64,000 nt of DNA from Bugula neritina (lineage: Eukaryota; Animalia; Bryozoa). The position numbers and the translations under genes were made by a program. Each line of letters begins with the position of its first letter. The first letter of the stretch is position 1. The notes under the pieces were generated by a model. That model did no database searches. It was not told where the DNA came from and saw nothing but the letters and a program-made list of their open reading frames with translations. Below are positions 6,656 through 63,641 of this stretch, piece by piece. The stretch covers positions 28,660,628 through 28,724,627 of the forward strand of contig OZ037767.1 of NCBI GenBank assembly GCA_964035545.1, read 5' to 3'.

Positions 6656-6984
6656 GTTGAAGAAGTTAATGTTGAAACCCCCGAGAATCACTTTCTTTTA
6701 CTAGGAACGACTATCGTGTGCCTTAGCTTGACCAGTCCTTAGCTTACGAAGTCTTGACGTGATATGAACAACGTTGTTTATAGTTTTTTAACGCTACGTC
6801 TGCAGAGGCTGTTGATTAGTCTAGACAGATTTCACTCCCTTCGTAGACAATATAAGATTATGTTTCAATGCGGTTAGTCTCGGCTAAATTCCGCACGACT
6901 AAGTTGCTGAATGTTGATAACTATCCTTTGATTTGCTTCAAATGAAGTCTATTGAAATAGGCATTATTCTAACCAACAAGGTAT

Positions 6985-8472: not shown

Positions 8473-34078
<25,606 letters not shown>

Positions 34079-34218
34079 TTCTGGCTCAATTATTAATACC
34101 GAGCTAACTAAATCATAAAAAGGGAATAAGACTTTAGAAGATGTTTTTATAATCTCAACACCAATAAAGTCAACGGTAATAAAAATGAATTATCAAACAT
34201 ATGATTCAATAAATACAT

Positions 34219-35211
34219 TGAAGTAAATTTGTGTCTGACACCAGGTGTCACTATTGACGGTAAGTAATCTCACTTAACAATGAGGGTCGGAATAGAATTC
34301 CCTTGTGCGGAAAACTAATTAAACTATCTAATACTGTTTGTTGCCAAATTATTTGCTAATGTGATTTTAATATTTTCCAGTGACTATTGATTTCTGGTGT
34401 TCGGTAACAGTGCTGGAGTGTGATAGGGACACGGCTATGGTTCGCCGATTTATATCACAGCAACTGTAGTCAGAGACAGTGACAGAAATCTAATTCCTGA
34501 TGTTCGAATCGCAGAGACTCGACAGGAATTCCGCAACGCAAGAGAGTCACTACAGTGGAAAAATGATTTCTGGTGTTCGGTAACAGTGCTGGAGCGTGAC
34601 AGGGACACGGCTATGGTTCGCCGATTTATATCACAGCAGCTGTAGTCAGAGACAGTGACAGAAATCAGATTCCTGGGATTTGAATCACCGAGATTCAACA
34701 GGAATTGCAGCGCAAGTAATCACCATTGACAAACCTATAGAAACTAACCACCACTATTGCCAACTCAATAGCAACCTAATCAAAGAGCAGAGTATTTCGC
34801 AAAGAATAAAATTTATTATATTTATAAGAGTCAATTATAAACATTACAACAGGCAACAGTCGACTGACTGCTACTAAAAATTACAACTCTATTTATATCC
34901 ATATTACGGACGTCTTGGAGCACAAAACGGACGTCTTGGAGTACAACCAATTATTTACATACAAAAATTTTATAAAACTCAACAAATTTAATATAAAATT
35001 AGCATTACAACTTGTATCAACCAATCACAATATATCAAAATTAGTTGACCTAGCTTTGAGTTAGTTAAATTATATTGCCAGAATGATTTAACTTGCAAGT
35101 CCGATAAAAATCACCTTGACCTAGTCTCTATATTCACAATATTGTTATTCAGGGCCGTCAACTTGACGCAACGTGTACTGCTCGATGGCTCTAATAATAT
35201 TTTTTACTACA
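34219..35211 (-). repeat. 3' LTR
   Basis: No difference from 40520-41512 seen by eye. On - it has a TATA box (TATAAATA, about 34890-34897), an Inr-like TCAGT (about 34865-34869) and AATAAA (34812-34817). Confidence 0.97.
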
Positions 35212-38200
35212 CCATCCCCTCCGGAGATAGAATTCCGTCCCGGAATTGGACCCTTCTTAAGTCTTTTAATTGGGTTGGCAGCTTCTACTAATGCAGGAAA
35301 TTCTTCATGGTAGTTACTGAACCAGTCAGCGTGTAGAATGGTTTGGGTCTCTGACTTCTTTGGCACAACTCTGTTAGTATAGTTAGACTTCGGCCAGGAG
35401 TGTACTCGATCTAGGTGGTAGTCTCCAAACCGAACAGGTTTGCGTCTTTGGCGGTTTGATCTAAAGCCAGGATCAGCTGAGTGGGTTTCTTCACCATATG
35501 TTTCTAACTCCTCTATAGCTGCAGACTCGCCTTCTTGGGGATGGTCATCGTCTTTCCGGTTTACATCAACACTTTCCTCCTTGGTCAATTCCTTCATACT
35601 GGAGGTAGATGGTAATCCGTCGGTTTCTGGTTCTACAGCAGTTCTATTATGTACGTCAACATCAGGTTCTGCATCTGGTAAGGCTCCGGGAGGTCTCACT
35701 ACGGCTGGGTCTTCTGATAATTGGGGTGTGACAGGCAGGATCTCTACATCGTCTTCTTCTTCTGTAATGAAGCCATTGGTGACCAAGTCTTGAGATGGTA
35801 TAGTGGGCAGTGGTGTTTCTGCGACAGTAGGTGGCCTTGTATCACCTGGAACAGGTGGGGTGGCTGCTAGTGCTCTATCCTTTTGTCTGGAGTCAGTTGA
35901 TTCTACATATGCTTTGATGCGCCCTTCATGTTGAACACTGTATTTGCCATCCTTTACCATACGATAAGTCTGGAACGGCAACACTTTAGTGATGGTGTAA
36001 GGCCCCACATATTTAGGACGGAGCTTAGCACCTCGTCCCTGTCCTTGGTAGTATGATTTTAACCAGACTTTATCGCCTTCCTTGTATGGACTGTCTTCCT
36101 CTTCAGGTTGAGGTATCTCCATCTGTTGTTGTCTCAACCGCTCATGGACTTGTTGTAGCCTCTCTCTGAGTTTATCCACAAACTCTTCCACTGGTAACTC
36201 CTGTGGGTCTTCTTGCTGGAACAAAAGATCTGCAGGCAATTTCACCTCCCTGCCTAGCATCAGAAAATTTGGGGTCTCGCCGGTGATTCGGTGTGGTGTA
36301 GCTCGAATTGTCCGCAGGATTTGTGGAACTAGCAAATCCCACTCCCTGTGAAGAGATTCGGCTAGAAGGGCACGCAGGGAATTTCCTAGGGTTCTGTTTA
36401 GCCGCTCGACCACGGAATTTCCTTGTGGGTGATACGGTGATGATCGTGTCTTATCACAGCCCCACAACAAACAGCACTCCTGAAAGATTTGGGATGTGAA
36501 TTGCTTTCCTTGATCAGAGTGGATGCATTCTGGGACTCCAAAGTAGCTGAAGACCCGCTCATCAAGCACCCGGGCGACAGTTGTGGCTGTCCCATTTTTT
36601 ATTGGGATAGCGTCATACCATCGGGTGAAATGGTCTGCTAGTACCAGTATCTGTGTGTTTCCTTGGTTTGTTTCAGGAAATGGTCCACAGAGGTCAATTG
36701 CAAGGATCTGCCAGGGGCGTCCGGCATGAAGATGATTCTGGGGGTTGGAGGATCGATGAGGGACAGGCTTAGCTTGCTGACACTGTTGACAACCCTGCAC
36801 TTGTCGTCTAATCTCGGCTGACATTCCAGGCCAATACCACTTTTCTTGTACACCAAGTAACGTTTTGTTGACTCCTAAATGTGCCTGTTTATGGATGGAT
36901 TCCACTACTTCACTTCTCAATGCACGAGGTAAAACAGTCACCATGTGACCCTCCCGGCGGTGCCTCGTTTTTATCATCAGGCGCCCTCCAAGAAGGCTGA
37001 GCTCTTCCCACCAGCGAAGTAGTGCTTTAGTCTCTCCGCCCACTTGGTCCACGTTAGGCTTCACTCCTTTCTGAAATGCGCGATAAACTGGACCAATGAC
37101 TGCATCTGTTTCTTGGGCTTGACGAATGGCGTCCATTTCAACATTCATCTGTGGCACAGCTTTAACTGCAACATGAGTAACCTCCGCAGCAACTTCCACT
37201 CTCTGGTCATTCACCGCGTTGGGTACTAGACTCATGGGTCTGTGGGCCATTGGGGGCTTCAACCATTCTGACCACTCCTGTGGCTCAGTCTTCTTTGGAT
37301 GGAAAATAGGGAATTGTGCAGCCTGTACAGTCGTTATTCCTTGCACTATGTCCGTCTGGGTAGCAGTGGAGTGGAATCTTGGTTCTTTGTTTGGTAAAGC
37401 AGTCTGGGAAAGGTTGATCTTCTTCTCAGGTGATGGAAACATTCGGTCACACTGTTTACATTCTTTGCATATCTGCCGGCTCAGTCCATCAGCATTGTTA
37501 TGTTTTCGCCCTTTCCTATGCTGTATCCTGAAGTTGTATTCGGATAGCGTTTCCAACCATCTTGCCAATTGTCCTGTCGGGGCAGGGTTTTGAAGCAGCC
37601 AAACAAGTGAAGCATGATCAGTCCTTACAAGGAACTGGCGGCCATAGAGTTGAGGCCGAAAATGGCGGACCGCTTTAATTATTGCCAGTAACTCCTGTCT
37701 GGTGACACAATAGTTGCTCTCTTCGCTGGAATACATCTTAGAGTAGTAGCTTACCACCCTCTCCTCGCCACCATGGATTTGGGACAGGACAGCCCCGGTA
37801 CCGACTTGACTAGCATCTGTATCAAGTATGAATTCTCTAGCATAATCAGGGTATGCAAGAATAGGGGCAGTAACTAGATGAGCCTTGAGTTTGTTGAAAG
37901 CCAATTCGCACTCCTCATCCCATTGAAATCTGGAATCTTTTGAACATAACTGGCTGAGGGAACGAGATACCTCGGAATACCTAGGGATAAACCGTCGATA
38001 GTACCCACATGTACCCAGGAATGCCCTGACATCTGTCTTATGCTGGGGTCGAGGCCACTCCTGTACTCTCTGTACCTTGGAATCATCTGTCGAAATACCA
38101 TTCTGACTGACAACGTGGCCTAGATACTGGACTTGTTCGGCAAATAAGGTGCACTTCTGAGGCTTTAATTTAAGTCCAGCAGCTGTTAGACGCTGGAAAA

Positions 38201-39653
38201 CTTCAGCAAGCCTTTCAAGATGGCTATTCATATCTTTGGAAAAGACTATGATGTCGTCTAGATATATTAGGACTGTTTGCCAATGTAACCCTCTCAGGAC
38301 AGTCTCCATCAATCGTTCAAATGTAGAGGGCGCTGAGGTTAACCCAAAAGGCAGGACTTGCCACTCCCACAAGCCGGACCTAGTAGAGAATGCCGCTTTT
38401 TCCTTGGCTGATTCTTCCAGTTCTACCTGCCAATAGCCACTAGTTAGATCTAGAGTGCTGAAATATTTGCTGCCTCCCAGCGCGTCTAAACTGTCATCTA
38501 TACGTGGGAGGGGGTAAGCATCCTTGTGTGTACTGTCATTAAGTTTGCGATAGTCAACACAGAAGCGCCAGGTTCCATCCTTCTTCTGTACTAATACAAC
38601 TGGTGAACTCCATGCACCATACCCTTCACGGATTAGTCCTTGGGCCTTCAATTCTTCTACCTGTCTTTCAATTTCTTCTTCTTGGACAGGGCCATGACGA
38701 TAAGGTCTCTGTTTGAGGGGTCGAGTCCCCGACACTAGAGGGATTTCATGTTTTACTAGATCTGTGCGACCTATGTCATATTTGTGGGCACTAAAAACTC
38801 CCCGGTGTCGCCTCAACATCTGTGTAGCTGCTTGTTTTTCTAATGGGGGCAGATGCTGGCACCACTTCTTCACTTCTTGTTCAAATGCATCTGGGGTAGC
38901 ACCTTCGGATTGCGGAGATTCAATGGACTCTACAGTACAGCATCTGGTGAGCACTTTTCCAGGTGGAATGGTGACTGGCTCCGTTGTATGGTTAAGCATC
39001 CTCACATAGATCTTTGGTTGCTGCTGAGGATGGTATAGTGCACTGGCGATTACCACCCCATCAGTGTAAGTTTTTGACTCCAAGAAAGCATGTTGACGAT
39101 TCCATGGCCGAACTATGCGGGCTTCCACAAGACTCTCTGCACGGGGCGGCAGAACTGTAACATATTTAGCCTGTACGTTGGCGTGGAAAGGCTGCCGTCG
39201 TTCATCACAACAGCTTATGGTTTGTTCTCCCATCCGGAACAAGCAATTAGAGAAATCTATGTAACAGTGAAATTGTTCGAAGAAATTGAGACCCAGTAGT
39301 ATTTGGTTGTCTAGATTGGCTACTAGGAACTGATGAGTGTAGACAGTAGAACCCAGTTTAAAGGTGAGGCATGTGGTACCTTCCAGTTTGACACTTTTTC
39401 CATCTGCGAGTGTGCAGTGCCCTGTTGTAGGAATGAGAGGCGTATAACAGTGGTCGGCAATTTGACGTATTACTGATGTAGGTAGGATTGACTGTGTGCA
39501 CCCACTGTCAAGTAACATAACCTCATCCTGGGTTCCAATCTTGACTGGAACATAGTAGGCGGTTCTCTGCTTCGTTAACCGGACATGTGTTCGACCCATA
39601 GGATTCAGTTCGACAGTGACTGGGTCATTTAGTGTCGAACTAAATCGTTTCCC
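35145..39653 (-). CDS. pol: Gypsy Pol polyprotein (protease, RT, RNase H, integrase), probably made as Gag-Pol by -1 frameshift
   Basis: ORF 35145..39599, open upstream to about 39656. Protease LLDSGC; RT YLDD; RNase H ILDTDASQVGTGAVLSQ; integrase HHCC (H..HLG..CQQC), DLCGP/SDQG/ERLNR; GPY/F motif LRPKYVGPY; no chromodomain. Confidence 0.97.
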   Translation of the reverse strand, partial: GKRFSSTLNDPVTVELNPMGRTHVRLTKQRTAYYVPVKIGTQDEVMLLDSGCTQSILPTSVIRQIADHCYTPLIPTTGHCTLADGKSVKLEGTTCLTFKLGSTVYTHQFLVANLDNQILLGLNFFEQFHCYIDFSNCLFRMGEQTISCCDERRQPFHANVQAKYVTVLPPRAESLVEARIVRPWNRQHAFLESKTYTDGVVIASALYHPQQQPKIYVRMLNHTTEPVTIPPGKVLTRCCTVESIESPQSEGATPDAFEQEVKKWCQHLPPLEKQAATQMLRRHRGVFSAHKYDIGRTDLVKHEIPLVSGTRPLKQRPYRHGPVQEEEIERQVEELKAQGLIREGYGAWSSPVVLVQKKDGTWRFCVDYRKLNDSTHKDAYPLPRIDDSLDALGGSKYFSTLDLTSGYWQVELEESAKEKAAFSTRSGLWEWQVLPFGLTSAPSTFERLMETVLRGLHWQTVLIYLDDIIVFSKDMNSHLERLAEVFQRLTAAGLKLKPQKCTLFAEQVQYLGHVVSQNGISTDDSKVQRVQEWPRPQHKTDVRAFLGTCGYYRRFIPRYSEVSRSLSQLCSKDSRFQWDEECELAFNKLKAHLVTAPILAYPDYAREFILDTDASQVGTGAVLSQIHGGEERVVSYYSKMYSSEESNYCVTRQELLAIIKAVRHFRPQLYGRQFLVRTDHASLVWLLQNPAPTGQLARWLETLSEYNFRIQHRKGRKHNNADGLSRQICKECKQCDRMFPSPEKKINLSQTALPNKEPRFHSTATQTDIVQGITTVQAAQFPIFHPKKTEPQEWSEWLKPPMAHRPMSLVPNAVNDQRVEVAAEVTHVAVKAVPQMNVEMDAIRQAQETDAVIGPVYRAFQKGVKPNVDQVGGETKALLRWWEELSLLGGRLMIKTRHRREGHMVTVLPRALRSEVVESIHKQAHLGVNKTLLGVQEKWYWPGMSAEIRRQVQGCQQCQQAKPVPHRSSNPQNHLHAGRPWQILAIDLCGPFPETNQGNTQILVLADHFTRWYDAIPIKNGTATTVARVLDERVFSYFGVPECIHSDQGKQFTSQIFQECCLLWGCDKTRSSPYHPQGNSVVERLNRTLGNSLRALLAESLHREWDLLVPQILRTIRATPHRITGETPNFLMLGREVKLPADLLFQQEDPQELPVEEFVDKLRERLQQVHERLRQQQMEIPQPEEEDSPYKEGDKVWLKSYYQGQGRGAKLRPKYVGPYTITKVLPFQTYRMVKDGKYSVQHEGRIKAYVESTDSRQKDRALAATPPVPGDTRPPTVAETPLPTIPSQDLVTNGFITEEEDDVEILPVTPQLSEDPAVVRPPGALPDAEPDVDVHNRTAVEPETDGLPSTSSMKELTKEESVDVNRKDDDHPQEGESAAIEELETYGEETHSADPGFRSNRQRRKPVRFGDYHLDRVHSWPKSNYTNRVVPKKSETQTILHADWFSNYHEEFPALVEAANPIKRLKKGPIPGRNSISGGDGVVKNIIRAIEQYTLRQVDGPE
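35212..35227 (-). other. Polypurine tract (short)
   Basis: GGAGGGGATGG on - immediately before the TG of the 3' LTR. Confidence 0.75.
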
Positions 39654-40465
39654 TGTCTAGATTGGGGACATCTCCTTGCATAGTGCCCTTTCTCTCCACA
39701 AGCATAGCAGGTAACTGGCGTTGGCGCAGTTCTAGGGTGTCGGCTTTGTACCGAGGCAGTTGACAAGGTCAATTTCTCCAGCATGGCTCCTTGAGTTTCC
39801 ATGAGTTTCTGCATCATCTTATTTTGCTGTGCCATGTATTGGTCCAGTCGAGCTTCTAACTCAACCATACTGTCGTTCTTCACTTGACGCACTGTGGTTG
39901 TGTTTGTTTGTAGTTGGGAAAATTGGTGGATGATGTCTATGGTGGCTTCCACAGTCTCTGGTGTGCGATGATTTAATTCCCAGCGTAATGTTTTATACTC
40001 ATCAGGTAATGCATTTATTAGCTCTTTAATAGTGCGCTTCATTCTACCATCCTCATCTAGTTCTGGGATGGCCATCTGAATTATTCTTTTTAGATAGTTG
40101 GCAAATTCGTGTATATTTTCTTTAGGGTTCCAGCTGACCTGCTTCAGTAGCTGACTGGCTCCTTGCTCTGTGAGTTGATACCTGGTTCGGAGTTGACCAG
40201 CACGATGTGTATAAGTGCCCTCTGGTAATCCACGCTTTGCTGCTCCAGTCACAGCCATATCAAAACGTAGCTCAGTTTCTGCATCCTCCCACTTATTAAG
40301 TACTCGGACTTGTTCGAACCTACGTAAGAACTCGTCCACATCAGTAGTGCCATCAAATGACGGGGGTGGTAGGCGAGTATGTTGCCGTTGATTAAGTATA
40401 GTAGCAGCCTCCTTTGCCATGTCTCGAATTCCTGCAGCGGCTTCACGAAGAGCTTCTTCTGCCAT
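39629..40465 (-). CDS. gag: Gypsy Gag with CCHC zinc knuckle
   Basis: 278-aa ORF with PPSFDGT..VDEFLRRFE near the N-terminus and CYACGEKGHYARRC. Confidence 0.95.
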   Translation of the reverse strand: MAEEALREAAAGIRDMAKEAATILNQRQHTRLPPPSFDGTTDVDEFLRRFEQVRVLNKWEDAETELRFDMAVTGAAKRGLPEGTYTHRAGQLRTRYQLTEQGASQLLKQVSWNPKENIHEFANYLKRIIQMAIPELDEDGRMKRTIKELINALPDEYKTLRWELNHRTPETVEATIDIIHQFSQLQTNTTTVRQVKNDSMVELEARLDQYMAQQNKMMQKLMETQGAMLEKLTLSTASVQSRHPRTAPTPVTCYACGEKGHYARRCPQSRQGNDLVRH

Positions 40466-40500
40466 TTTTATAGTGGGTTGTCTAGTATTGCTCTAGAAAT

Positions 40501-40518
40501 ATCCCACTGCTGCCACCA
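40501..40518 (-). other. Primer-binding site complementary to the tRNA-Leu 3' end
   Basis: TGGTGGCAGCAGTGGGAT on -, 1 nt after the 5' LTR. The + strand reads ATCCCACTGCTGCCACCA, like the 3' end of eukaryotic tRNA-Leu(AAG/UAG). Confidence 0.85.
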
Positions 40519-40519
40519 G

Positions 40520-41512
40520 TGAAGTAAATTTGTGTCTGACACCAGGTGTCACTATTGACGGTAAGTAATCTCACTTAACAATGAGGGTCGGAATAGAATT
40601 CCCTTGTGCGGAAAACTAATTAAACTATCTAATACTGTTTGTTGCCAAATTATTTGCTAATGTGATTTTAATATTTTCCAGTGACTATTGATTTCTGGTG
40701 TTCGGTAACAGTGCTGGAGTGTGATAGGGACACGGCTATGGTTCGCCGATTTATATCACAGCAACTGTAGTCAGAGACAGTGACAGAAATCTAATTCCTG
40801 ATGTTCGAATCGCAGAGACTCGACAGGAATTCCGCAACGCAAGAGAGTCACTACAGTGGAAAAATGATTTCTGGTGTTCGGTAACAGTGCTGGAGCGTGA
40901 CAGGGACACGGCTATGGTTCGCCGATTTATATCACAGCAGCTGTAGTCAGAGACAGTGACAGAAATCAGATTCCTGGGATTTGAATCACCGAGATTCAAC
41001 AGGAATTGCAGCGCAAGTAATCACCATTGACAAACCTATAGAAACTAACCACCACTATTGCCAACTCAATAGCAACCTAATCAAAGAGCAGAGTATTTCG
41101 CAAAGAATAAAATTTATTATATTTATAAGAGTCAATTATAAACATTACAACAGGCAACAGTCGACTGACTGCTACTAAAAATTACAACTCTATTTATATC
41201 CATATTACGGACGTCTTGGAGCACAAAACGGACGTCTTGGAGTACAACCAATTATTTACATACAAAAATTTTATAAAACTCAACAAATTTAATATAAAAT
41301 TAGCATTACAACTTGTATCAACCAATCACAATATATCAAAATTAGTTGACCTAGCTTTGAGTTAGTTAAATTATATTGCCAGAATGATTTAACTTGCAAG
41401 TCCGATAAAAATCACCTTGACCTAGTCTCTATATTCACAATATTGTTATTCAGGGCCGTCAACTTGACGCAACGTGTACTGCTCGATGGCTCTAATAATA
41501 TTTTTTACTACA
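40520..41512 (-). repeat. 5' LTR
   Basis: Matches 34219-35211; followed on - by the PBS. Confidence 0.97.
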
Positions 41513-42919
41513 ACATATATAAAGTAATCAACAGTTGCACTGCACTTTACATCAAAGCAATATTAACATTGTTTATGAGTATAGAAAACTTAAACAATAA
41601 ATTATTAAAAGATTGAAAGGTGTTAATCTCAAAACTACATTAGGAAATCAATTTTTCTATCAAAAATAAAAGTGTCAAATACAGATGATTTGCAGATGAT
41701 GAGGTGGATTTTAGCTACGGTATTAGCCAAGAACTGTAAATCTTTTAACTGAAAGTTTTCAAAATAATTTTTAAATTTCAGGTAAACTTTGTTTAAGAAA
41801 CCCAACTGTATCACAGGATATTAAACTTTAATTGTTGTGTAGGGAGAAAATTGGAGCTCACACCAATTCAGGGGAAGCCAGAAAATATCATAAACAAGCA
41901 TATACTATAAGTATATCATATAAAAAGAAAACACAAACTAACAACATCTTCAAAACTACTATAAAGTCTAAGAAAAAGTTTAGCAGCTATGCTCTAGCAG
42001 ATAAACAAAAGCAGCTTAAAGTTGAAGTTACACCTACTGACACTGACAGTCAAAATAAAAAGGGAGTATTACCATTGTTGTAGTTTATAAGATTTAGGTT
42101 AGGTTTCAGATTCAATATTACCATTACCATGAATTATCATAACCATTATCATTATGATTAATACTTATGGTTATACTATCACTATGAGTATCAGTATGAG
42201 TATGAGCATGACACTGATAGCACGAATATAAAATATCATTTAATATGACTATTAATATTAGTATTTACTTTTAGTATTAGTGTTCCTATTAGTATTACTA
42301 GTCTCACTGTAAGTGTAACGTAATTGTAAGACTATCCCTAAGACTAAGAGTAAGAGTGTTACTGTTCGACTCAGAGTTAGTGTAACGGTAAGACTAAGAC
42401 AGTAAGTGTAACTGAGTAAGAGTTAGACTTAAACTTAAAGTAAGTGTATAAGCTTAAGCTACGCCACGAAACTGAGTACAATAGCACACGTTCGTGCTTT
42501 CTGTAAAATTGAATAAATTCATATTGGTAGGTCAATTAGGTTTGGCGTAATCAATCTAAACATTTCACAATAAAATAGAAAGTCTGTGTTATGGGACATA
42601 GCCCACAGGATTTGACTGTCCCCTAAGCTGTATGACTCAGAGAGCAACTCCACCTATAACTTATTCACGTAAACTATAGCCTACTTTTTCAACTCAGCAC
42701 AGTTCTACCGAGAACGGGTAAACGCAATTACAATTTCTATTATAGCGTAACTCTGTAAAGTTCTTGATTGAAAGATTATAGTCTATAAGAGATTTTGCTA
42801 AGATTACACCACGTGACTAATCTTAATTAAATTAAAGAAAACTTGTTATACAGTTATTGTTTAACAAAATTAGATAATTTTTAATTTTTAAATTTTAGTT
42901 TATTTTCATTTATTTTTAA

Positions 42920-43080: not shown

Positions 43081-46000
43081 ATGGTATGTGCAAATATAAA
43101 TAGTTTTATTTGTTTAGTCTAATTGATGAATGATTCGTGTCGTGCTATTTTTGTGCGAACTGTGAAGCCTCAATATAAATCTCATGCTAATGCTATCAAG
43201 TATCAAATTCAATAATATAAATTAAAATATTAATTAAATTGAAATTCAATATCATCATACTCATACTGATACAGTGATACTCATACTAATACTCATACTA
43301 ATACTCATTGTGATAGTCACAGTGATAGTCATAGTGGTAGTAATGCTCATGCTGATACTCATAGTCACTCATGATTGTGAATTGGCCATGTGCCTAGTGC
43401 CTACTCATTATCACAGTGAGTGTGACAATGATGATAATATTTATAATATGTACCATTGTCATGGTGATACTGATACTAAATCATGTGATGGTTGCATTCT
43501 GTTTTAAAACATATTTATATTGCTATTTTCTATTGGTATTAGTGTCTAATTTTATGAGCATAGTACTAGTTAATACAAATGTTCATGGCCGTAATTGTTA
43601 AAATAATTTTTTCGTTTTCATGATGGCACTCATTGTACAATGAAGTGACAATCTTATTAATTATGATTGTTATGAATATTTTTTAATTGATCTAACATAT
43701 GTTTTTACACTATTGAATTTAATCTGCTACTTTCTGACAGACACTATGACCATTATTAATTGAATCTAATAGCTTTTACTCTGTTTTTGCACTATTTCCA
43801 TTCCAAAGAATTATGTATACCTTACTTTTTATTAACTCAGTAATGTTTGCACTGATTGACAGTATATGGAGCAGTGATGAGTATTGCTTACAGTATAGGT
43901 ATACTAGTGTAGGTCTGTATGACAGTTATAGTTTGATGATATTGTCCTGGTTTTAATTATATATTGCATTTGATTAAAAATGTCTAGCAATTAGCAATCT
44001 CTTTCAAAATTGAGTAAAACTAGTGAATATTCAGCTTAGTCAATCTTTAAATATAGTTTATATTTATTTTATGCAATTTGAATACAAAAATATATCAGTT
44101 TTGATGTCTATAATTTAGAAATCCATTTATAAATCATGGATTAAAAAGATGTGTTATTTTAGCTTTTTGTTCAGTAGTTGTAGAAAGTTTTGTCATTACA
44201 TTGAATAGGGGGACCAGCAGCTTGACTGTGCCTTGGATTTGATGCGAAGGCTTCCACCTCAACAGATTGAGAAAAACCTCGGAGACCTCATAGACATCGT
44301 GCCACACTTGTGTGAAGATTTGCTGTCGGCTGTTGATCAACCTCTTAAAATTGCTAAAGATAAAAAGAGTGGCAAAGATTACTTGCTGTGCGACTACAAC
44401 AGAGATGGCGACTCTTACAGGTCTGGTAGTTATCTTATCTTGTATGTCACCTCAGTAGTTATTTCTCAGTCATACTCAACACAACTGATGTTTCTTGCAG
44501 ATCTCCTTGGAGTAACGAGTATGAACCACCTCTGGATGAGGAGGGTGCCATGCCTTCAGACAGACTTAGGAGGCTAGAAGTTGAAGCCAATGACGCTTTT
44601 GATAATTATAGACAATTGTGAGTGGTTACAATTTCTTTGGCTTTTTTGGTGAACAAGTTAGAGGATTTTTTATTTATTTAGTTTCCCTGAAAATGGCACA
44701 AGGTTTTACTTTAGCTTTCTGCAAATATCCGAACCATTGTTTTGAATCTGAGTGTTTTTCTGAAGCCAAAAGCAAAATCATAATTTTTATTGGTATAGCT
44801 GCACAAACTAGTTATATCTGGTTTGTTTGAAGGTATTTTGAAGGGGGCGTGTCCTCCGTATACCTGTGGGACTTGGAGTCCGGTGGGTTTGCTGGAGTTG
44901 TTCTTATTAAAAAAGCCGGAGATGGATCCAAGAAAATCAAGGTGAGTTCCTTTATTAGTTGTGGTCAGTTGCTACTTTCTGAAATAGTGGTTTGCTTAAG
45001 TTTAACTTTTAACTACTGGTTTGTGAGTTGGTTTCAGTGACTTCTAGGTACAAACTATAGCTGGGCCAGTTTAAAGTTTGATTAACAAGTGTTGAAAGTT
45101 TTGAGGCGTGGCTTTCAAGCTTACAAAAGCTGTGTGTAGTTGAAATCAAGAAGCTCTCATCTGTAACCTTAGCATTCATTTTATAGAACATGATTAACAA
45201 AAACTTGTTTTTGGTAAAGAAAGGAATGATATCAGATTTAATTAATATATCTTGCTGGGTGATTTACATTTCACTATAGATGAGACACTATAAAATTTCT
45301 ATAATGCAATAGTTGGTCCATTGCATTCTCAGAATTACATTTTCTGTTGTGAAACTTATTTTACAAAAGTTGGAACGTGCAGTACATGTTTGTCAATCGC
45401 CATTTGCAAGCATTGCACTGCCATTTTGTAATGTCACTGCCTAGCATTAGCTCTAAAGGTTTTGTACAAGGCTAGAGTAATCTGCTTAGACCAAGTTCTC
45501 AGAAAGAAGGTTTTCATGCCAGTGTTGTATGAGCTACTTATACTAAGGCTTCATATCTCACCATTTTGTGTGGTAGGGATTGGGTGATCTTTCAAGAATT
45601 GTTAGCACAATGTGTAAATTTTTAGATTATATACTCCATGTAATAAATAGTATCCTCTATATAGTTAATAGTATACTCTATATAGTAAATAGTATTTATG
45701 GTGTGTACCTAGGGATGCTGGGATAGCATTCACGTTATTGAGGTGGTAGAGAAGTCCGGTGGTAGAAATGCACACTACAAGATCACATCTACAGTTATGT
45801 TGTGGTTACAAACCAACAAGGAGAGTTCTGGCAGCATGAACTTGAGTGGCAGCCTAACCAGACAGGTTGGTTGATGTCTGGTTGCTATCGGTTAGCAATG
45901 TGTTGTTTGTCGCTTTATATCATATATTTTTATTAGTCATTTTCTGTTGTCATGGCGATTTATCTCATATTTAGTAATTGCTACAGAGTATGTTCGTGTA

Positions 46001-50388: not shown

Positions 50389-50396
50389 TATATAAG
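50389..50396 (+). promoter_or_regulatory. TATA box of the putative neuropeptide gene
   Basis: TATATAAG about 70 bp upstream of ATG 50463; ATTGG (reverse CCAAT) at 50301. Confidence 0.55.
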
Positions 50397-50462
50397 CAGT
50401 TGGATGTCAAGAGACAGTGTTAGACAGGTATCGCTACTGAAGAGCTTCATTCAGGACTAATC

Positions 50463-51167
50463 ATGCTGCTGAATTTTAACCGTTTTCTCTTTTTCTATTT
50501 GTTCATTATGACCCTTTTTTCACTGCAAGTAACTGCTCATTACTATGGCAAGCGTTTTCAAGGTAAGATCATATTCACTTATAAAGCTACTTCATGAAAT
50601 TTGTATAAATTAAGCAAGGAATAAGTTTGGCTTTTTCAATAGAAAAATAGTCAAAGCAGCAATTATTTGCCACTGTAAATGATAATTATGAAATGTAGCA
50701 AGTAAAAGCGGCTAAACCCAAGTTTTTACGACTGTAAGTTAGCTTATAGATAGTTTTTGCAATACAAAATTTAAAATTTCATATTTCAAACATGAAAAGC
50801 ATTAGTGTTAATTAGTCATCTAATTTTGGTAATGCGCTCTTTTAGTTTTAAAAGACTAGGCACACCTCACAGTGTACATATTGGAGTAATTTAAATTTAA
50901 CTGTTGTTGGGTTGCTGTAACTTTTCCTTCATTGTTTTAAATGTAGCCGATGATTTAAGACCGAGTCAACTGAATAGTAAAACTGTGGCTCCGATAGAAA
51001 GACCAACTTACTACAATACACAGACTAATGAAAAACTTGAAGCACAGAAAGCCAATAAACTTCGGACTCTGTTGGAATATATATCTGGAAAGCTGCCAAG
51101 AAAAAGTGACAAAAGAGTTATACAACCCGAATACCCATACATCAGCAGGTATGCAGGCAAACTATAG
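50463..51167 (+). CDS. Putative secreted neuropeptide precursor (signal peptide + HYY-GKR), about 100-106 aa
   Basis: Exon 50463-50562 (MLLNFNRFLFFYLFIMTLFSLQVTA-HYY-GKR-FQ, donor AAG|GTAAGA) joins in phase to the exon from 50947 (tgtag|CC; ADDLRPSQ...LRTLLEYISGKLPRKSD-KR-VIQPEYPYISR). It ends at TAG 51167 or splices at AG|GTATGC (51148). Confidence 0.72.
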
Positions 51168-54100
51168 ATTTTACTCTATATTTTCACAGCAGTTAAGATT
51201 GTATTTGTAGTTTTTTATTTGAGTTAATAAAAACTTTTTGACAACCTATTTACAGTCCTTGCAGATACATATATTTTCAAAGTACATACAGATGAAGGCA
51301 TAAACTAGAATGGTAGAAATAGGTCATTGTAGCTTTAATGATAACATTCATTTCTTTGAGAAGTGAAAACCTTGCAATAGAAATGTGCATGTAAAGTGCA
51401 ATAAGAGCTTAGAACTCATTGTTTCATTTGTGTACTTTTCACGCCTCTGAATTTCCATGTCTGTAAATAAACTCATGTGTCCAAGTGTAAGCGCTTCATT
51501 GATCTGCATTTATATAGTATATGTGGTAGGTTTGTACAATTTTTGCATAGCTCATTCTCATTGCATTGTTGCTTTTTTAATTGTTTACAACTGCTGTACT
51601 ATAAATAGCTGAGTGAGCAACCCAGTGTCTAATAAAGCTAATGAGTAGCAAAACATTTCTTTGTATACAGATGAGCAAAGTAGTAACGTAGTGTGTGTTG
51701 TAATCTGTTTCCTCTATCCTTTTTTAGATGAAAGCACCAAAACAATTAAATAATTACTAGAAGGTTTAGTGAACTGATTGAATCAATACACTTGAAGTGA
51801 CTTAAATAGATGACCTCTAAATACTGGGACCGGAACTTGTTATCAACGCTGCACCACTAACGAGTTTAGCTTGAAGCGCCACTCAATCTGGCTTACACAT
51901 GGAGTTCATAGTTTTACTACTGTTTTAATATGAGACACTATAGTAAATTGGTGAAAGTTTTTATGTATTGTTTACTTTCATTCTCTAAAAAAAGATGAGA
52001 GCTGTACCTTTATATATTATTTATACATAGACAAAATAAATAAATTATGCAGTACATTTTATATGGGGGCATTTCTATGGCTTATATTTTCCAAAACTGC
52101 ATGTTAAAGTGCATACATTTCAAATGCAATTACAGAGTAAGTTTAACTGGCAGTTCTCCAATATTCACTATCACACTCAGCATGTAAATTATTTCATAGC
52201 TGCCATTCTTTGTTCACACACCATACATCTTGATGCAAAATAAATACATACACCATCAATTGACATAGAAATACAGCTTACTATCTTCCAAATATATCAA
52301 ATTTATATCTAGTACTAATTTTCTTCACATTTAAATTTTGAAACTTTAATAAATTTAGTTTATTTCACAGAGCTTGAAGCTGTGTACTAGTACTGATCTG
52401 GTATTGGAAATACAAGTGGCTGTTTAATTATCAGAGCTTTAGCATTTTTGCACTTGCAGTACCTTTTCTCTCTGTTGCCATGTTTTCAGTATGCTTGTAT
52501 TATCATATATTGCGACATTGTTTATTCAACATTAAAAGAAGTTTCCTACATTTAGAAACCTTGCTGTATAGTATGAAAACACTAATTACTGGAAATGCTG
52601 ATAATTTGTGAATTGATACCAGGAAAATCATATTAATACAAACTGTCACAGAATCTAGACTGAAGATATCAATGCTATACTACCAAAACAAATACAGACT
52701 CAGTACTATTATGTATTACGAAGTTCTAATTAGGATAATGAGCATACTCCTACAAGTTGATTAAGTTAACTTCTAGTATGGCTGCTAGCTTTCCTTACGC
52801 TAATATTTCATGTTCTGTGCTCTTTTCAAAACATTCATAATCTAAAGTCTAGACTCTAGACTCTATTTAATTTGGTATTTAAAGACGGAGTAAATTTTGA
52901 AATTGCATGCAATTCAAAGTGACCAGATATCCCCCAATCTGAAACATAACAACTTCTTTTAAAGTCTAATAAGATCAGATAAAAACGCACAGAATATACA
53001 GTCATGCCAATTGGTGCGACAACCAGTGGATACAATGATGTCAACTAAATTATAAAATATAGTTCATCCCCAGATATTGAAAATTTCGGCAATTGTAGAA
53101 CTCATTAAGCCACAATATCTACTTAGACACTTGTAATACACAGTTGTCAGTATAAGGTACATAGTTCTCTGAACACTGTTATGCTATAAATTTCTAGTCA
53201 TTGCTAAGAAGAGATGCTTCAAGCTACAAAACCTTTAACTTTTGCATATATAATATATAACAAACAATGAGTTATGAATACATACACAATGTATGTAACG
53301 TCTACCCCAGTTTATTGATAACAGGTTGCACTGCTGGAGTTTTGCTGATGTTTATTTAACTAACTGGTAACCAACGTGAAACTACAATAATACGATTTAA
53401 TAATAAAGACATTATTGAAAGAAAAATGAAACATACAAAAATTACAAAATTGTTGCAAAACAATGTTTAACATACCTCTATTACCCTTCCTGGGGAGAGT
53501 TAGAATTAAGTATATAAAATTGTGATGGTGAAAGTTTAATCAAATAAAGAATGACTAGTTAGAACTGCAACAGTCAGTAGAGAAATGAAGGCATAAAAAA
53601 CTTTAGCTATTATAACTTCTGGCTACAAACTATAAAAAGCTGACAGCTATTCTGTTAGCAAAATCATTGCATTGTAATAGTGAAAACAAAGCTATTTGTG
53701 GTTCAAAAAAGCTGTGGCTGTGTGAGTAGTTAAGTTAATATAAGGGTGAATGGTGATGAATTGTCCTGTGCCGCTGTATGTAATAGTGTGTAATATAATA
53801 AAAAATGATCAAAACGCTACAATGTAGTTTTATTACAACAGTTTACTCTAAAATTATAGTAGATAGATTCTAAGTGAAATAACTAGTACAGCCTTATATA
53901 TATATTATAGCAATGTGCCACAAGATGCTGTAGAAAGCATTTGGACATACTGTAGGTTTATCAATGTAAGTGCATTTGGGTGATGATACAGGTATAACCT
54001 ATATTCCTACAGTTTTCATTTGTGGCTTATCTATTGACTGTAAACTGCAGCAAATCTATTATATTAAGATGTCAATGAATTTAAGTAAATGCTTTAAATA

Positions 54101-55085: not shown

Positions 55086-58000
55086 TCAGCTAGTTACGCC
55101 ACTGGTCATCAAGTGTGCTGAAATTGAATAATATACGAGTGTGTCAAGGTGTTCTTCTTTTGTGGAAGCAAGCAAATTACAATACATACTGGATGTTATC
55201 TTAGATGCACATATCCATGTTTTCAACACTTTAGTATGTTTGTCATCATTTCCTGTCATTATAAATTATCTCAAATGAACCGAATACGATAGAAATGGGC
55301 ATACTCTTTCAGAATATAATTACAAATTTACAACTACACAGAAGAAAATTTTCATTCGTTAGCTGATCACCTTGTAGAGGTATGTGTATAGGCTCGTTAT
55401 CGGCTATGGTCACATGATGCAATGCATTGTGGAACTTGTATCTTATATATAAACTCTTTTCCTCTCCGTAACACGGGTCGTAGAATCCAGGCATCTCAGC
55501 CTGCAACACAGCACGGCATTTTATAGCACTGAGCAAACATATCAAATTCAGATAACAGATACAAAGCCTTAAGCTGTTGAGAGAGGACAACTCTTAACAT
55601 TTGAAAGTGCACCAACACATTGTGTGTGTTGTGTTTGTGTTGTGTGTGTATGTGTTGCGTGTGTGTTGTGTGTGTGTGTGTTGTGTGTGTGTGTGTGCTT
55701 GTGTGTGTGTGTGATGTGTTGTGTGAGTGTGTGTGTGTGTGTGTTGTGTGTGTGTGTGTGCTTGTGTGTGTGTGTGATGTGTTGTGTGAGTGTGTGTGTG
55801 TTGTGTGAGTGTGTGTGTGTGTGTGAGTGTGTTGTGTGTGTGTGTGTGCTTGTGTGTGTGTGTGATGTGTTGTGTGAGTGTGTGTGTGTGTGTGTTGTGT
55901 GTGTGTGTGTGCTTGTGTGAGTGTGTGTGTGTTGTGTGAGTGTGTTGTGTGTGTGTGTGTGCTTGTGTGTGTGTGTGATGTGTTGTGTGAGTGTGTGTGT
56001 GTGTGTGTTGTGTGTGTGTGTGTGCTTGTGTGAGTGTGTGTGTGTTGTGTGAGTGTGTGTGTGTGTGTGAGTGTGTGTGTGTGCGCGTGTTGTGTGTGTG
56101 CGCGTGTTGTGTTCGTGTATGTGTCCACATCACTGATGTGATGATTTAACTATTTGTAACAAGATCAAGCTGCTCTCTACCACCCTGTATTATTACAATA
56201 TGCTATTGAATATGTTGACATATTGACAAATAGAATCAAATTAAAGCTCTTCCTTTTAAGAGGACATAACTTCTAACACACTGCAAACTACGAGGACACA
56301 ACTCCCTACTCAACTGATAAAACTGAACAAGTTTCAAACCTTTGATATAATGCCGGCTATCTTGAGAGATGAGTTCTTCACCTGGTGCTGTAAAGGAACT
56401 GTAACATTGATCACCACGTCCTCAGCAGCATCACTGAAAAGAAGAACCACACATAGTGAAGATGCTTTAAGATCTTAAGCTAAGTTTAAACATTTCACAT
56501 TATTTCTCTTGCCCTAGGCTATACTTTCAACTACTCCAACTGAACAACAATCAAGTGTTAATCAAATATATTTATTTACATATTCCTTTCCAAGTGACCT
56601 AAAGCTGAAGGGATTTTAATGAGTTGAAAAACAACAAGTGGGTGTTTATATTTTGAATATTGGTAAATATTTGGGGGAGATAACTTCAGCAAGTGAAAAA
56701 GTACCTGAAGCAAATTTGGTGCAGCCCAGCTCGTAAATTAACAGATATTACTGTACAAAACATGCAATGGCAGAAATTCATTGACAATACTGCTTTACTA
56801 ATAAGTCCCAATCAAAATATTTAAAAGCCCAAGAATTAGCCATTTCAATTAACTTGACAGAAGTCAATTAGCTGATAAACAAGCATGAACAGCATAGAAC
56901 CTCCCTAATTAAGGTGGTGGATTAGACTGCTAACAATTTTGATATTATAAATTTTATAAGAAAATCATCAAAACCTTGACAGCTCATGTATAAATAGCAT
57001 GTCTGCTTCCATTCCAAGCTATGTGAACATAAAGGATTACATTAATACCTCCTTAGAAAGAGAGCACATATTCAGTACACCATTTGATGAAGTCAGCCAA
57101 CCTTTAATATACTGCAATAATACCAGAGATTTCCAATACAAGACATATACTAGTACCTTTGCTGCATAGCCTGTAGTCTGCCATACAAAGCTTTCACAAT
57201 GACGAGACCCTGCACTCTCTGCTCTAACTCAATGCTCTGTTCAGCTGCAGACGTCATCAGATTCACTTCCAAGATGGCTGCCTCCCGTCTCGCATCTAGA
57301 CGCTTCTTTTGTTCTTCTTTTTTTTTCTGCAGTCTCCTATGATGTGGCAAAGAGGCACAAATGATGTTTGAACTATGAGGGGATAATTCTCATTTTGTCA
57401 AAAGATGCATGGCACAATAATTTCACAGACAGAATAGATGTATAAGAGCCTGAATAAATAGACCTTTGCTAATTACACAGAAATATATTGAAACAATAAA
57501 ATACACTTTATCTGTGAAACTTGAATTTTCAAAAGGAAAACCAATCAAACAAAACTACACGGGAAATACATTAAGCTAACCTTTTGAGTTTAAGCTTTAT
57601 ATCAAATGCTGCATTTTTATCTTAAACTTAATTAATTGACTTTGACACTAAAGGTAATTCAAATATATCTTTAAAAAATATTGTCAAGTACTGAACTGCG
57701 ATTTGACTATATAATTAATATGTAATCAATGTTTAACTTGATAAAATTAACAATTATTAATTTTGAAAAGTAGTAAAAAAAAACTAGAAACTCTGAAAAC
57801 ATAATGAAGCATGAGGCATATGCTGGTAATTATATTATACTGAAACTTATAACTATACACACATCTGCACACGCACACTATAGAATATAGTAAAGCGTAT
57901 ATTAAACTGTAAAGTTTAATAATTCCAAAAATAAAACTTATTAACCAGCTAATTCGAAACTGTCAACCAATTCTATGAATATTGACTGCATAATACAAAG

Positions 58001-61000: not shown

Positions 61001-63641
61001 CTCAAGGACTCCTCAGCACTTCACATGGAATTAGTGTATTATGGTTCGTCAAGAATAATTTTATTAAATAAATATGTAGATAAAATGATGCTTTTATTTA
61101 GTTGCAAGTAATGATTGATACTAGTCGGTTGGGCGCACACCTCCAATCACAACTTTCTAGCCTATTTTCTCTCCAGAAGATACTTGATACCGAATATCTT
61201 CAGGTTTGCATCTATAGTTGGCAAAAACTTCTTATAAGCAATTTTGACTTTGTATTTATCATAGTACTGTTCAGTGTAAAACACTCTAAAATGAATATTC
61301 CACATCTTCAAGTTTATACATCTATTAACAAAAGCCGTAAAACACTTTTGCAGTGTATCAGTGATTGATCTGTTAATTGGAACTGTGGTCCTCATCACAG
61401 CAAACTGTCCGGCACAGCACCAGCTCCTGATCCACCCAGAGCTCTGCTCGATGAGTGAAATCTGTGCAAATCTCCTGCTCATCACATCTCTAGGCTGGCT
61501 AATGATAATCAGTATTGAAAGGCTGAAAGCGGTGAGGAATATGGCAGTCGCACCCTTTACGGCTCAAAATAACTCAACCCGAAGGCAAGTTCAAGAATTG
61601 TGTGTATTTTAAGTATAAAATGCCGCCAAAAGTCATGTTAATATTGAAAATCACACACTATAAATTTTTTTTGAAGGATTAAAAATGGTGAAATACTAAT
61701 AAAGTTGCTTGGAATGACTGCCCTCACTTTGATAGCCATCGTAGTTTTTGTTACTGCATATAAAATAGATAAGCAAACTGGCCATCAGAACCTGCTCCCT
61801 TGTCACTCTGGGTGAGTACACCAGACTAATTTATACTTTCCAGTGACCCACACAAAACTTAACTTTTATAATGTACTATATTTGCTACATGTACCGCTCA
61901 GCCCAACGGGGTTTTTTATTTCAACAGCGGCATCTATATTCTTGTTAACATGATAATATATTGCACAAAAAGTTTTCAACAATTATTATGATTTCTTTGC
62001 TAAAAGAGTTTATTATTATTTTACTTTACATCTTTCTCCCATAATATTCTATCAAAGCTTCTCTTCTTTCACATCATGATTGTTTTTGTGCAGATTTACT
62101 ACATGCCTTGCACAGAAAACAAGAAACTCTGTCAATGAAAACGTTAGTTTGGTACTTTTCATAATTCCAATGGTGGTTATTGGTTTCATCTACATATCAA
62201 TTATTTATGTACTTCATAGACAACAATCATCAGGTTAGTACTCAGTCACTGCTAGTTTATTAGTAGTCACACTAATATTTGCTCATGCCAACTGGTTGAA
62301 CCATTGAAGTATTTCCTGATTATTAGTTTAATATTAGTTTCAACATGGTGGTTATGGTGACATAAAGGTTTTGAACAGCTAAAATAGAATCTAGATCTAC
62401 ATTTAGATCAATATTTATTTCATATATTACAGTGAGTCTTCAATCCCAAGCTGCTAAGAAACTGAAATCATCGACCAGATCGGTAGGCTTCCTGTCTCTG
62501 ACATTCATCATATCCTACCTGCCGATAATCATGTTGAAAATATTTGCCAAAGTGGAGAGTATCAAGAGCACAGATATAAGAGCTTACAGAGCCTCATATA
62601 TGGTGCTATACATGAATGGGTTCATTAATCCCATAGTATATGCATTGTCCAATAAAGAATACAGAGAGACTGCCAAAAGACTGTTGCGTTTATGTTCTGT
62701 GATCAAAGTAGCCACGGCACCACCTGAGCCCACCACAAGAGTTTAGCGGTGCAGATGGATTGTACTATGACTGCTGTGTTTATATACCAGCCAGTGATCT
62801 GCTCTACCACTAAGTCAGATACGAGTATTCAATGACACACAGCAGGAAAGAAGTCTCTTAATTTTAGACCAAGATTTAATTTTAAGTTTTCATCTTGAAT
62901 GATGACAATAATGGAAACTAACGAGAATAACTTGCAGTTATTCGCTGTTTTAATGATAGCATCCTTTAGCGATATACTAATAATTATTATTATTGCAACA
63001 ATAATTGTAGTCAATTGTACAGCTGCTGTCAGGTCTGACCTCACAGAGAGATCCATTTTATGTCATACCTGCTATTTTTAACACCCTTTACGTATAAAAA
63101 ACGGTTCCTTTGTTCAAAAGTATTTTCCAAAGCTGATGGGGTGAGCAATACATGACATATTATAATGTGAGAACAATCACATTTGTTTTTAGGATTGTCT
63201 GTAAACATAATTTCACAAGTCGTGCTGAACACACTAACTTTTGTCAGCAATAGAATGCTTGCTCAATCATTGCTGGTATTAGCAGCAGTGTTTTCGTAGA
63301 AACGTCCTTATGTGGATAGACCTCACTTATTGCTTATTATTCAAAAATCTTTGATGAAATTTCATTGATAATTTTCAATTACTATGTAACAAATTATCTA
63401 GAAAATAAATTGAAAAAATATTAACCACAACATAGCCTTTTACCTAATGACAAATTCATATCTTCACACACTCACCTATATTTTGACATACTCCTAGAGA
63501 AAGAGCAGGAGAGGTTATTATTGTGTCCAATCACAAGACCAGCATTGCCAACTACACCATACGGGAGTAGCCGACGCCATCCCAAGGATAAGCAACCAGT
63601 AGCCCGACGACTGCTTTCGTAATTGGCTGACAAACTGCTGT
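55086..63641 (-). CDS. DNAJC11: DnaJ homolog subfamily C member 11-like, 3' part (J domain lies beyond the right edge)
   Basis: Phase-consistent exons 63476-63641, 60179-60243, 59284-59515, 58933-59052, 58316-58471, 57157-57336, 56340-56433, 55371-55500, 55086-55117. C-terminal DUF3395-type motifs GLVIVKALYG, VINVTVPLQ, MPGFYDPCYGEEKSLYIRYKF..ALH.V. AATAAA on - at 54781-54786. Confidence 0.88.
55620..56125. repeat. Complex (GT)n microsatellite with higher-order units
   Basis: Directly visible; explains the HT/CV-rich ORFs. Confidence 0.97.
58774..58803. repeat. (GCA)n microsatellite, intronic
   Basis: Directly visible. Confidence 0.8.
60674..62746 (+). CDS. Orphan class A (rhodopsin-like) GPCR, 6 exons, about 345 aa, nested in a DNAJC11 intron
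   Basis: Exons 60674-60688 (MTNQS, glycosylation sequon), 60841-61043, 61354-61584 (GC donor), 61677-61811, 62094-62233, 62433-62746 (1038 nt, in phase). TM1 AAN, TM2 SVIDLLIG, TM3 C...ISIERL, TM5 FIIP..Y, TM6 FIISYLP, TM7 NGFINPIVY, helix 8 NKEYR. Confidence 0.88.

Follow-up and report, generated by a model that had tools for sequence, protein, structure and literature searches.

A candidate secreted-peptide gene of the bryozoan Bugula neritina predicts His-Tyr-Tyr-amide, a putative counterpart of the NdWFamide/HWYamide peptides

We describe a compact, single-copy, two-exon locus of Bugula neritina with splice, signal-peptide and polyadenylation signals in place; very probably it is a genuine gene, with a secreted-peptide precursor as its predicted product. 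The candidate places one copy of His-Tyr-Tyr-Gly-Lys-Arg (HYYGKR) straight after a signal peptide. We hold with moderate confidence that it encodes a secreted HYY-NH2 precursor and that this is what bryozoans have as their counterpart of the NdWFamide/HWYamide family, with Tyr for Trp at position 2. The window, to which coordinates refer unless a genome position is given, is the whole 64,000-nt stretch of contig OZ037767.1 that was analyzed.

Gene model

The gene model consists of the following features:

50389-50396, + strand: TATA box TATATAAG, read directly, 67 nt 5' of the start codon
50463-50562, + strand: coding exon 1, 100 nt, ending in phase 1, with the near-consensus donor AAG/GTAAGA at 50563
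50563-50946, + strand: intron of 384 nt, GTAAGA ... TGTAG, in which a branch-like CTGTAAC and a stretch rich in T precede TGTAG/CC
50947-51167, + strand: coding exon 2, 73 codons and then the stop TAG at 51165-51167, encoding the precursor tail
51226-51231, + strand: polyadenylation signal AATAAA, read directly, 59 nt past the stop

A sequence-only reading of this DNA had proposed the TATA box, the 100-nt first exon, its strong phase-1 donor and an in-phase join to the ORF 50904..51167, and all four were recovered at the same positions. Transcription would start at about 50420-50430. The start ATG at 50463 has an A at -3, and the stretch from about 50420 to 50462 is otherwise free of ATG. The TATA box is weak support on its own, because 16% of random ATGs in a null sample from the genome are preceded, at -120 to -40, by a TATA-like heptamer. 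The acceptor at 50947 was also recovered by a simple scan for a pyrimidine tract followed by AG; exon 2 begins there in phase with the ORF 50904..51167, and in a local join of the exons the G carried over from exon 1 forms an Ala codon with the CC of exon 2. A codon-usage log-likelihood was also computed, and it scored the known exons of CAPZB, DNAJC11, SKI and the GPCR of the window (see below) no better than random ORFs.

Predicted precursor

The spliced product has 106 residues and no repeats. Its parts are:

50463-50537, + strand: signal peptide of 25 codons ending ...SLQVTA, assigned by the (-3,-1)-rule and a hydrophobic-core heuristic, with the predicted cut after Ala25
50538-50555, + strand: His-Tyr-Tyr (50538-50546), the amide-donor Gly (50547-50549) and the Lys-Arg convertase site (50550-50555), which appears as G000:C3:28711165 in our genome-wide motif list
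51018-51086, + strand: amphipathic helix of the tail predicted by AlphaFold2 from the single sequence, exon-2 residues 24-46, ending ...LRTLLEYIS

The signal peptide has Arg7 in its n-region, a hydrophobic core of 12-13 residues and the c-region SLQVTA, with Val at -3 and Ala at -1. Its best (-3,-1) site by the heuristic is V-T-A/H, with HYY, present once in the precursor, immediately after it; this agrees with the earlier claim of a 25-residue signal peptide cleaved at V-T-A and followed directly by HYY-G-KR. The Gly-Lys-Arg after the tripeptide is encoded by GGC AAG CGT (50547-50555).

The tail comprises the 75 residues after HYYGKR, with an acidic stretch soon past the KR. Further along, exon 2 encodes RK (51099-51104) and KR (51111-51116), after which comes a 16-residue C-terminal peptide. 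In the AlphaFold2 model of the exon-2 product, pLDDT is 85-88 over the block of the helix, with an overall mean of 70.9.

Genomic setting

The candidate lies between the 3' ends of two convergent genes:

44221-45868, + strand: exons of CAPZB, by Pfam
55312-57350, - strand: C-terminal exons of DNAJC11, by Pfam

Both flanking genes had been named from the sequence alone, and Pfam bears out both names. The locus itself is single copy and not a repeat in the 216-Mb assembly of 321 contigs.

We note other features of the window: (i) An apparently intact Ty3/gypsy-type LTR retrotransposon lies on the - strand at 35145-40465, within an insertion span of about 34218-41513; it has a 1484-residue Pol ORF with protease, RT, RNase H and integrase, and a 278-residue Gag with a CCHC knuckle. 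(ii) On the far side of DNAJC11, some 10 kb downstream of the peptide gene, are exons of a rhodopsin-type GPCR (61361-61612 and 62432-62746, + strand), with weak matches to 7tm_1 and to an Srw-type, peptide-receptor-like family. That a GPCR lies so near a peptide precursor may be coincidence. (iii) A SKI/SNO-family gene is represented by a large exon with Dachshund-homology and Smad4-binding domains (5633-6691, - strand). (iv) A long CA/TG-rich, microsatellite-like tract (55496-56133) adjoins the last DNAJC11 exon and yields artefactual Thr-His ORFs, and tandem-repeat blocks further upstream (21309-21722 and 23640-24327) give rise to long repetitive ORFs.

Expectation by chance

We estimated how often such an arrangement would arise by accident. 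The signal-peptide heuristic used for this takes a stop-free frame opened by an ATG, with a positive n-region and a core of at least 8 hydrophobic residues; the residues at -1 and -3 must both be small, and the cut must fall precisely on the codon under test. In a null sample made up of 200 kb of random genomic DNA and the rest of the window (0.52 Mb, both strands), 159 of 519,180 codon positions pass (3.0e-4), which extrapolates to about 130,000 signal-peptide-like positions genome-wide. When these are multiplied by the estimated chance that G-[KR]-[KR] follows inside a dozen codons, accidental combinations of a signal peptide with a short amidated peptide are estimated at a few hundred in the genome. 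Because so many accidental cases are expected, the general class of finding needs further support.

The 216-Mb genome holds about 52 copies of the motif [NH][WYF][YF]GK[RS], whose position directly after a signal-peptide-like ORF is thus expected 52 x 3e-4 = ~0.016 times genome-wide, with one case observed. Its Trp-free part, [NH][YF][YF]GK[RS], has 50 genome matches, against 57 in a reversed control. When matches to an ATG, 42-102 nt, a small residue and the motif were enumerated, 35 were found in the genome, and G000:C3:28711090 (window 50463) is the one match that keeps the frame, has no stop and is hydrophobic. The form with Trp, [NH]W[FY]GK[RS], has two matches in the genome, and stops just upstream of both rule them out as a canonical Trp-containing paralogue. 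A second HYYGKR 17-mer, at G000:C9:5326565, is likewise ruled out by stops four codons upstream.

Two related sequences recur in the genome. The 17-mer CAYTTTTATGGNAAAAG (H-F-Y-G-K-R/S) is present at at least 8 dispersed sites, for example C1:33578939, C2:17596886, C2:20244800, C3:2169703, C3:26988535, C3:28333537, C5:6428487 and C6:15160710, while AATTATTATGGTAAAAG (N-Y-Y-G-K-R/S) occurs twice, at C5:2824600 and C5:2830191, 5.6 kb apart. These sites probably belong to repeat or low-complexity DNA, since none of them is among the matches to ATG, small residue and motif.

The splice signals were compared with a null set as well. GTAAG has a frequency of 9e-4 per position in the genome, and at the locus it begins 7 nt past the KR codons. 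Among 395 null GTAAG sites, 5.8% are followed by an acceptor that opens an in-phase exon no shorter than 70 codons, with a poly(A) signal after it. Taken together, the donor 7 nt past the KR, the in-phase 73-codon exon, the poly(A) signal and the TATA box bring the expectation three to four orders lower, where the features are multiplied as independent and some of them were picked after the locus had been seen. The arrangement exceeds chance, and an accidental origin is unlikely even allowing for this post-hoc choice and non-independence.

Relatives and sibling lineages

The product of exon 2 has no relative in a word search of 5.8 billion proteins or, by HMMER, among 1.84 billion representative proteins; these libraries may or may not include members of the NdWFamide family, and short peptide precursors are often missed by searches of this kind. 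Pfam assigns no family to exon 1 or exon 2. As a control, the CAPZB exon found two 100%-identical gene calls, on the contigs L003 and L004, neither of which covers the candidate locus.

L003 (JGI 3300002729) is a 54.9-kb metagenome contig, 87-89.5% identical to the window in non-coding DNA, which breaks off at window position 48246, leaving about 2.1 kb to the TATA box. L004 (Logan SRR4020083) is 944 nt long and 92.7% identical to the window. On the other side of the locus, L008 (JGI 3300003318; 1.5 kb) carries the last DNAJC11 exon and stops at about window position 54000. With 87-93% identity in non-coding DNA and an identical CAPZB exon protein, L003, L008 and L004 fit two or more sibling lineages within the B. 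neritina species complex. The lineages of L003 and L004 stand at an ideal distance for a conservation comparison and offer a ready resource for it. L003 also aligns from window position 34218 straight on to 41513, without the Ty3/gypsy element, which is therefore a recent, lineage-specific insertion upstream of CAPZB.

Three distant short contigs anchored on the last DNAJC11 exon (L005-L007) contain no X-Ar-Ar-G-KR motif. Two metagenome scans, one of them of JGI/ENA with exon 2, and a degenerate-pattern scan of genome contigs found no copy of the locus, in collections from which records very near this genome may be absent.

The neuropeptide or hormone precursors described for Bugula neritina number only 11 (Wong et al. 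2016, PMC4990251), and the NdWFamide family is not among them. A literature search for HYYamide or HYYGKR gave unrelated matches only, with none in PMC4990251, and neither string occurs in the parts consulted of the Thiel and De Oliveira supplements. The vasopressin-like peptide of B. neritina (PMC4990251) was looked for with a degenerate pattern covering its first 12 residues, which had two matches in the genome and none in a reversed control; the genome is accordingly that of B. neritina or of a very near relative. This peptide, CYIRTCDLGILG, is encoded on the - strand at G000:C5:7281486-7281520 and 7288519-7288553, that is, by identical 35-nt sequences 7 kb apart, which suggests a recent tandem gene duplication or an assembly duplication.

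Processing and a possible D-residue

Cleavage of the signal peptide, the convertase cut, basic-residue trimming and amidation are established steps of the regulated secretory pathway. Applied to the predicted precursor, they would run as follows: signal peptidase would cut after Ala25 and a prohormone convertase after Lys30-Arg31; an enzyme of the carboxypeptidase E type would trim Lys and Arg; and peptidylglycine alpha-amidating monooxygenase would turn Gly29 into the amide. The mature product would be His-Tyr-Tyr-NH2, with a computed monoisotopic mass of 480.212 and [M+H]+ of 481.219. The genome has a gene for 7B2 (the PC2 chaperone) and many exons with Cu2-monooxygenase domains, so the processing machinery is plausible. 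The Cu2-monooxygenase family holds the amidating enzyme and also enzymes of the dopamine beta-hydroxylase type; because of the latter, these exons speak to plausibility only. For the locus itself we infer transcription, processing and neuronal expression, as well as descent from an NdWFamide gene and, tentatively, L-to-D conversion.

We know of no identified enzyme behind the L/D isomerization of neuropeptides. Ganglion extracts of Aplysia epimerize NWF-amide, and also convert GYFD to GdYFD (PMC11277431). The achatin-like GdFFD/GdYFD of Aplysia have an aromatic residue 2, Tyr included, that is converted to the D form by a molluscan peptide isomerase (PMC11277431); they are unamidated tetrapeptides with Gly first, encoded in several copies per precursor by an unrelated precursor family. 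Because these extracts epimerize Tyr at position 2, H-D-Tyr-Tyr-NH2 is conceivable for Bugula. By this analogy the mature product may be His-D-Tyr-Tyr-NH2, which we consider rather improbable. If true, bryozoans would gain their first neuropeptide with a D-amino acid and the NdWFamide type its first peptide with Tyr, not Trp, as the epimerized residue, and the neuropeptide L/D isomerase, together with its rule for an aromatic position 2, would predate the split of molluscs and lophophorates.

Alternative readings

The main rival to a bryozoan NdWFamide/HWYamide counterpart is a real secreted-peptide precursor gene that is a lineage-specific orphan and resembles the family by convergence, which we regard as a distinctly less likely account. 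The tail, with no match by HMMER in 1.84 billion proteins and no significant homology, would suit an orphan, as would the absence of the hallmark Trp and a tail of 75 residues with an extra KR site, compared with about 51 residues in phoronids. The tripeptide argues the other way, for His1 and Tyr3 are exactly those of the phoronid and limpet peptide, and Tyr is a conservative replacement for Trp. So does its single-copy placement straight after the signal peptide, which is the distinctive layout of the family, and under the patterns searched the genome offers no other candidate for this family, which is widespread among lophotrochozoans. Another reading accepts the gene as one for a small secreted protein and puts the function in the helical tail or in the 16-residue C-terminal peptide, so that HYY would be unreleased or an inactive by-product. 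The confidently predicted helix, the second dibasic site that would free the 16-residue peptide, and tails that in several family members look by eye better conserved than a mere spacer are in keeping with it. We nevertheless think it quite improbable, given that a G-K-R straight after a three-residue N-terminus is the canonical signal for amidation and cleavage, and that the corresponding tripeptide of Aplysia is the bioactive product (PMC11277431).

It might also be that there is no gene at all, and that a hydrophobic ORF, a GKR motif and splice-like signals have come together by chance in AT-rich intergenic DNA. Such a constellation would explain why the protein collections searched hold no gene call or relative. 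T-rich DNA easily encodes pseudo-signal peptides rich in Phe, Leu and Ile, an ORF of 87 codons is common in this DNA, the sequence-only reading had covered the whole genome, and by our estimate a signal peptide combined with a short amidated peptide should turn up in it a few hundred times by accident. Against this stand the rarity of a family-like motif after a signal peptide, of which the locus is the sole match genome-wide at an expectation of about 0.016, and the further drop in that expectation once the donor, second exon, poly(A) signal and TATA box are counted. We judge a chance constellation unlikely, somewhat more so than the orphan gene and somewhat less so than a function in the tail.

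Significance

As a fouling organism Bugula neritina is of major importance, and it serves as a model of larval settlement; a three-residue peptide is easy to synthesize for settlement, ciliary and muscle assays. A bryozoan counterpart would extend the NdWFamide/HWYamide family to another lophotrochozoan phylum. The replacement of Trp by Tyr falls on the very residue that is epimerized in Aplysia, and the candidate therefore lends itself to testing the substrate rule of the isomerase and co-evolution with the receptor. The gain is incremental, as the NdWFamide family, its architecture and its wide distribution across Lophotrochozoa are already known.

Comparison with known peptide families

Phoronids and bryozoans are both lophophorates. 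To our knowledge, the D-configuration, cardioactivity and neuronal expression are established within the NdWFamide family for Aplysia only. Published precursors of the family are those of molluscs, of nine nemerteans and of three phoronids (supplements to Thiel et al. 2021, PMC8557429, and Stewart et al. 2014, PMC4200219). They have 60-90 residues, with one tripeptide directly after the signal peptide and then GKR (PMC4200219, PMC8557429), so the single tripeptide-GKR layout that the sequence-only reading had ascribed to the NdWFamide precursor holds for the published members. The tripeptide is NWF or NWY in nemerteans and WWF in Lottia gigantea (PMC4200219, PMC8557429), while HWYGKR directly after the signal peptide is found in Phoronis australis, P. 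ijimai, P. psammophila and Lottia cf. kogamogai (PMC8557429, supplement files 2 and 27).

The placozoan 'YYamide' (DYDDYYY-NH2; bioRxiv 10.1101/360925) shares a Tyr-Tyr-amide C-terminus with the Bugula peptide. It is longer and acidic, stems from a different precursor and a non-bilaterian, and the likeness is in name only. Closer are Aplysia NdWFamide (Asn-D-Trp-Phe-NH2) and the nemertean NW[FY]-amides, which like the predicted Bugula peptide are amidated tripeptides with aromatic residues 2 and 3, encoded once after the signal peptide; they have Asn at position 1 and Trp at position 2, where Bugula has His and Tyr.

The phoronid and limpet HWYamide precursors are closest. Like the Bugula candidate, they carry a single His-aromatic-Tyr-Gly-Lys-Arg at once after the signal peptide, and are small, free of repeats and acidic for a stretch shortly past the KR; by eye, both also have a tail segment of hydrophobic periodicity, predicted as helical in Bugula. 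His1 and Tyr3 of Bugula are identical to those of phoronid and limpet HWY. Position 2 of Bugula is Tyr (TAC, 50541-50543), in contrast to the Trp of all members published in PMC4200219 and PMC8557429, a conservative difference in that both are aromatic.

The precursors differ in their tails. At 106 residues the Bugula precursor is somewhat longer than the roughly 75-90 taken for the family; its tail exceeds that of phoronids by 24 residues (75 vs about 51) and adds the RK/KR site and the 16-residue C-terminal peptide. The conserved Trp-Glu (...W-E-E) that follows the tail helix in the family is missing in Bugula. The family's tail segment reads ...[VI]L[KR]xIxx[IV][ILV]xxW[ED], and by eye Bugula has its predicted helix at the corresponding place. 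Likeness to the phoronid tails is limited, by eye, to small islands, namely D-x-[HR]-P-S and, in the helix, [VL]L-x-Y-I-x-x-x-L: the phoronid D-T-H-P-S just past the KR resembles D-L-R-P-S in Bugula, and LLEYISGKL of Bugula shares 4 of 9 residues with phoronid VLRYIKLVL.

Of the earlier NdWFamide-like reading, the layout stands and is strengthened by the HWYGKR of phoronids and limpet; the hallmark Trp and more than a slight similarity of the tail do not come with it. As the hallmark Trp is absent and homology of the tail undemonstrated, we rank the locus as a variant, short of a proven member of the family. Since the NdWFamide/HWYamide precursors of phoronids and a limpet carry HWYGKR in the same place, directly after the signal peptide, the reading that suits the locus best is that of their bryozoan counterpart.
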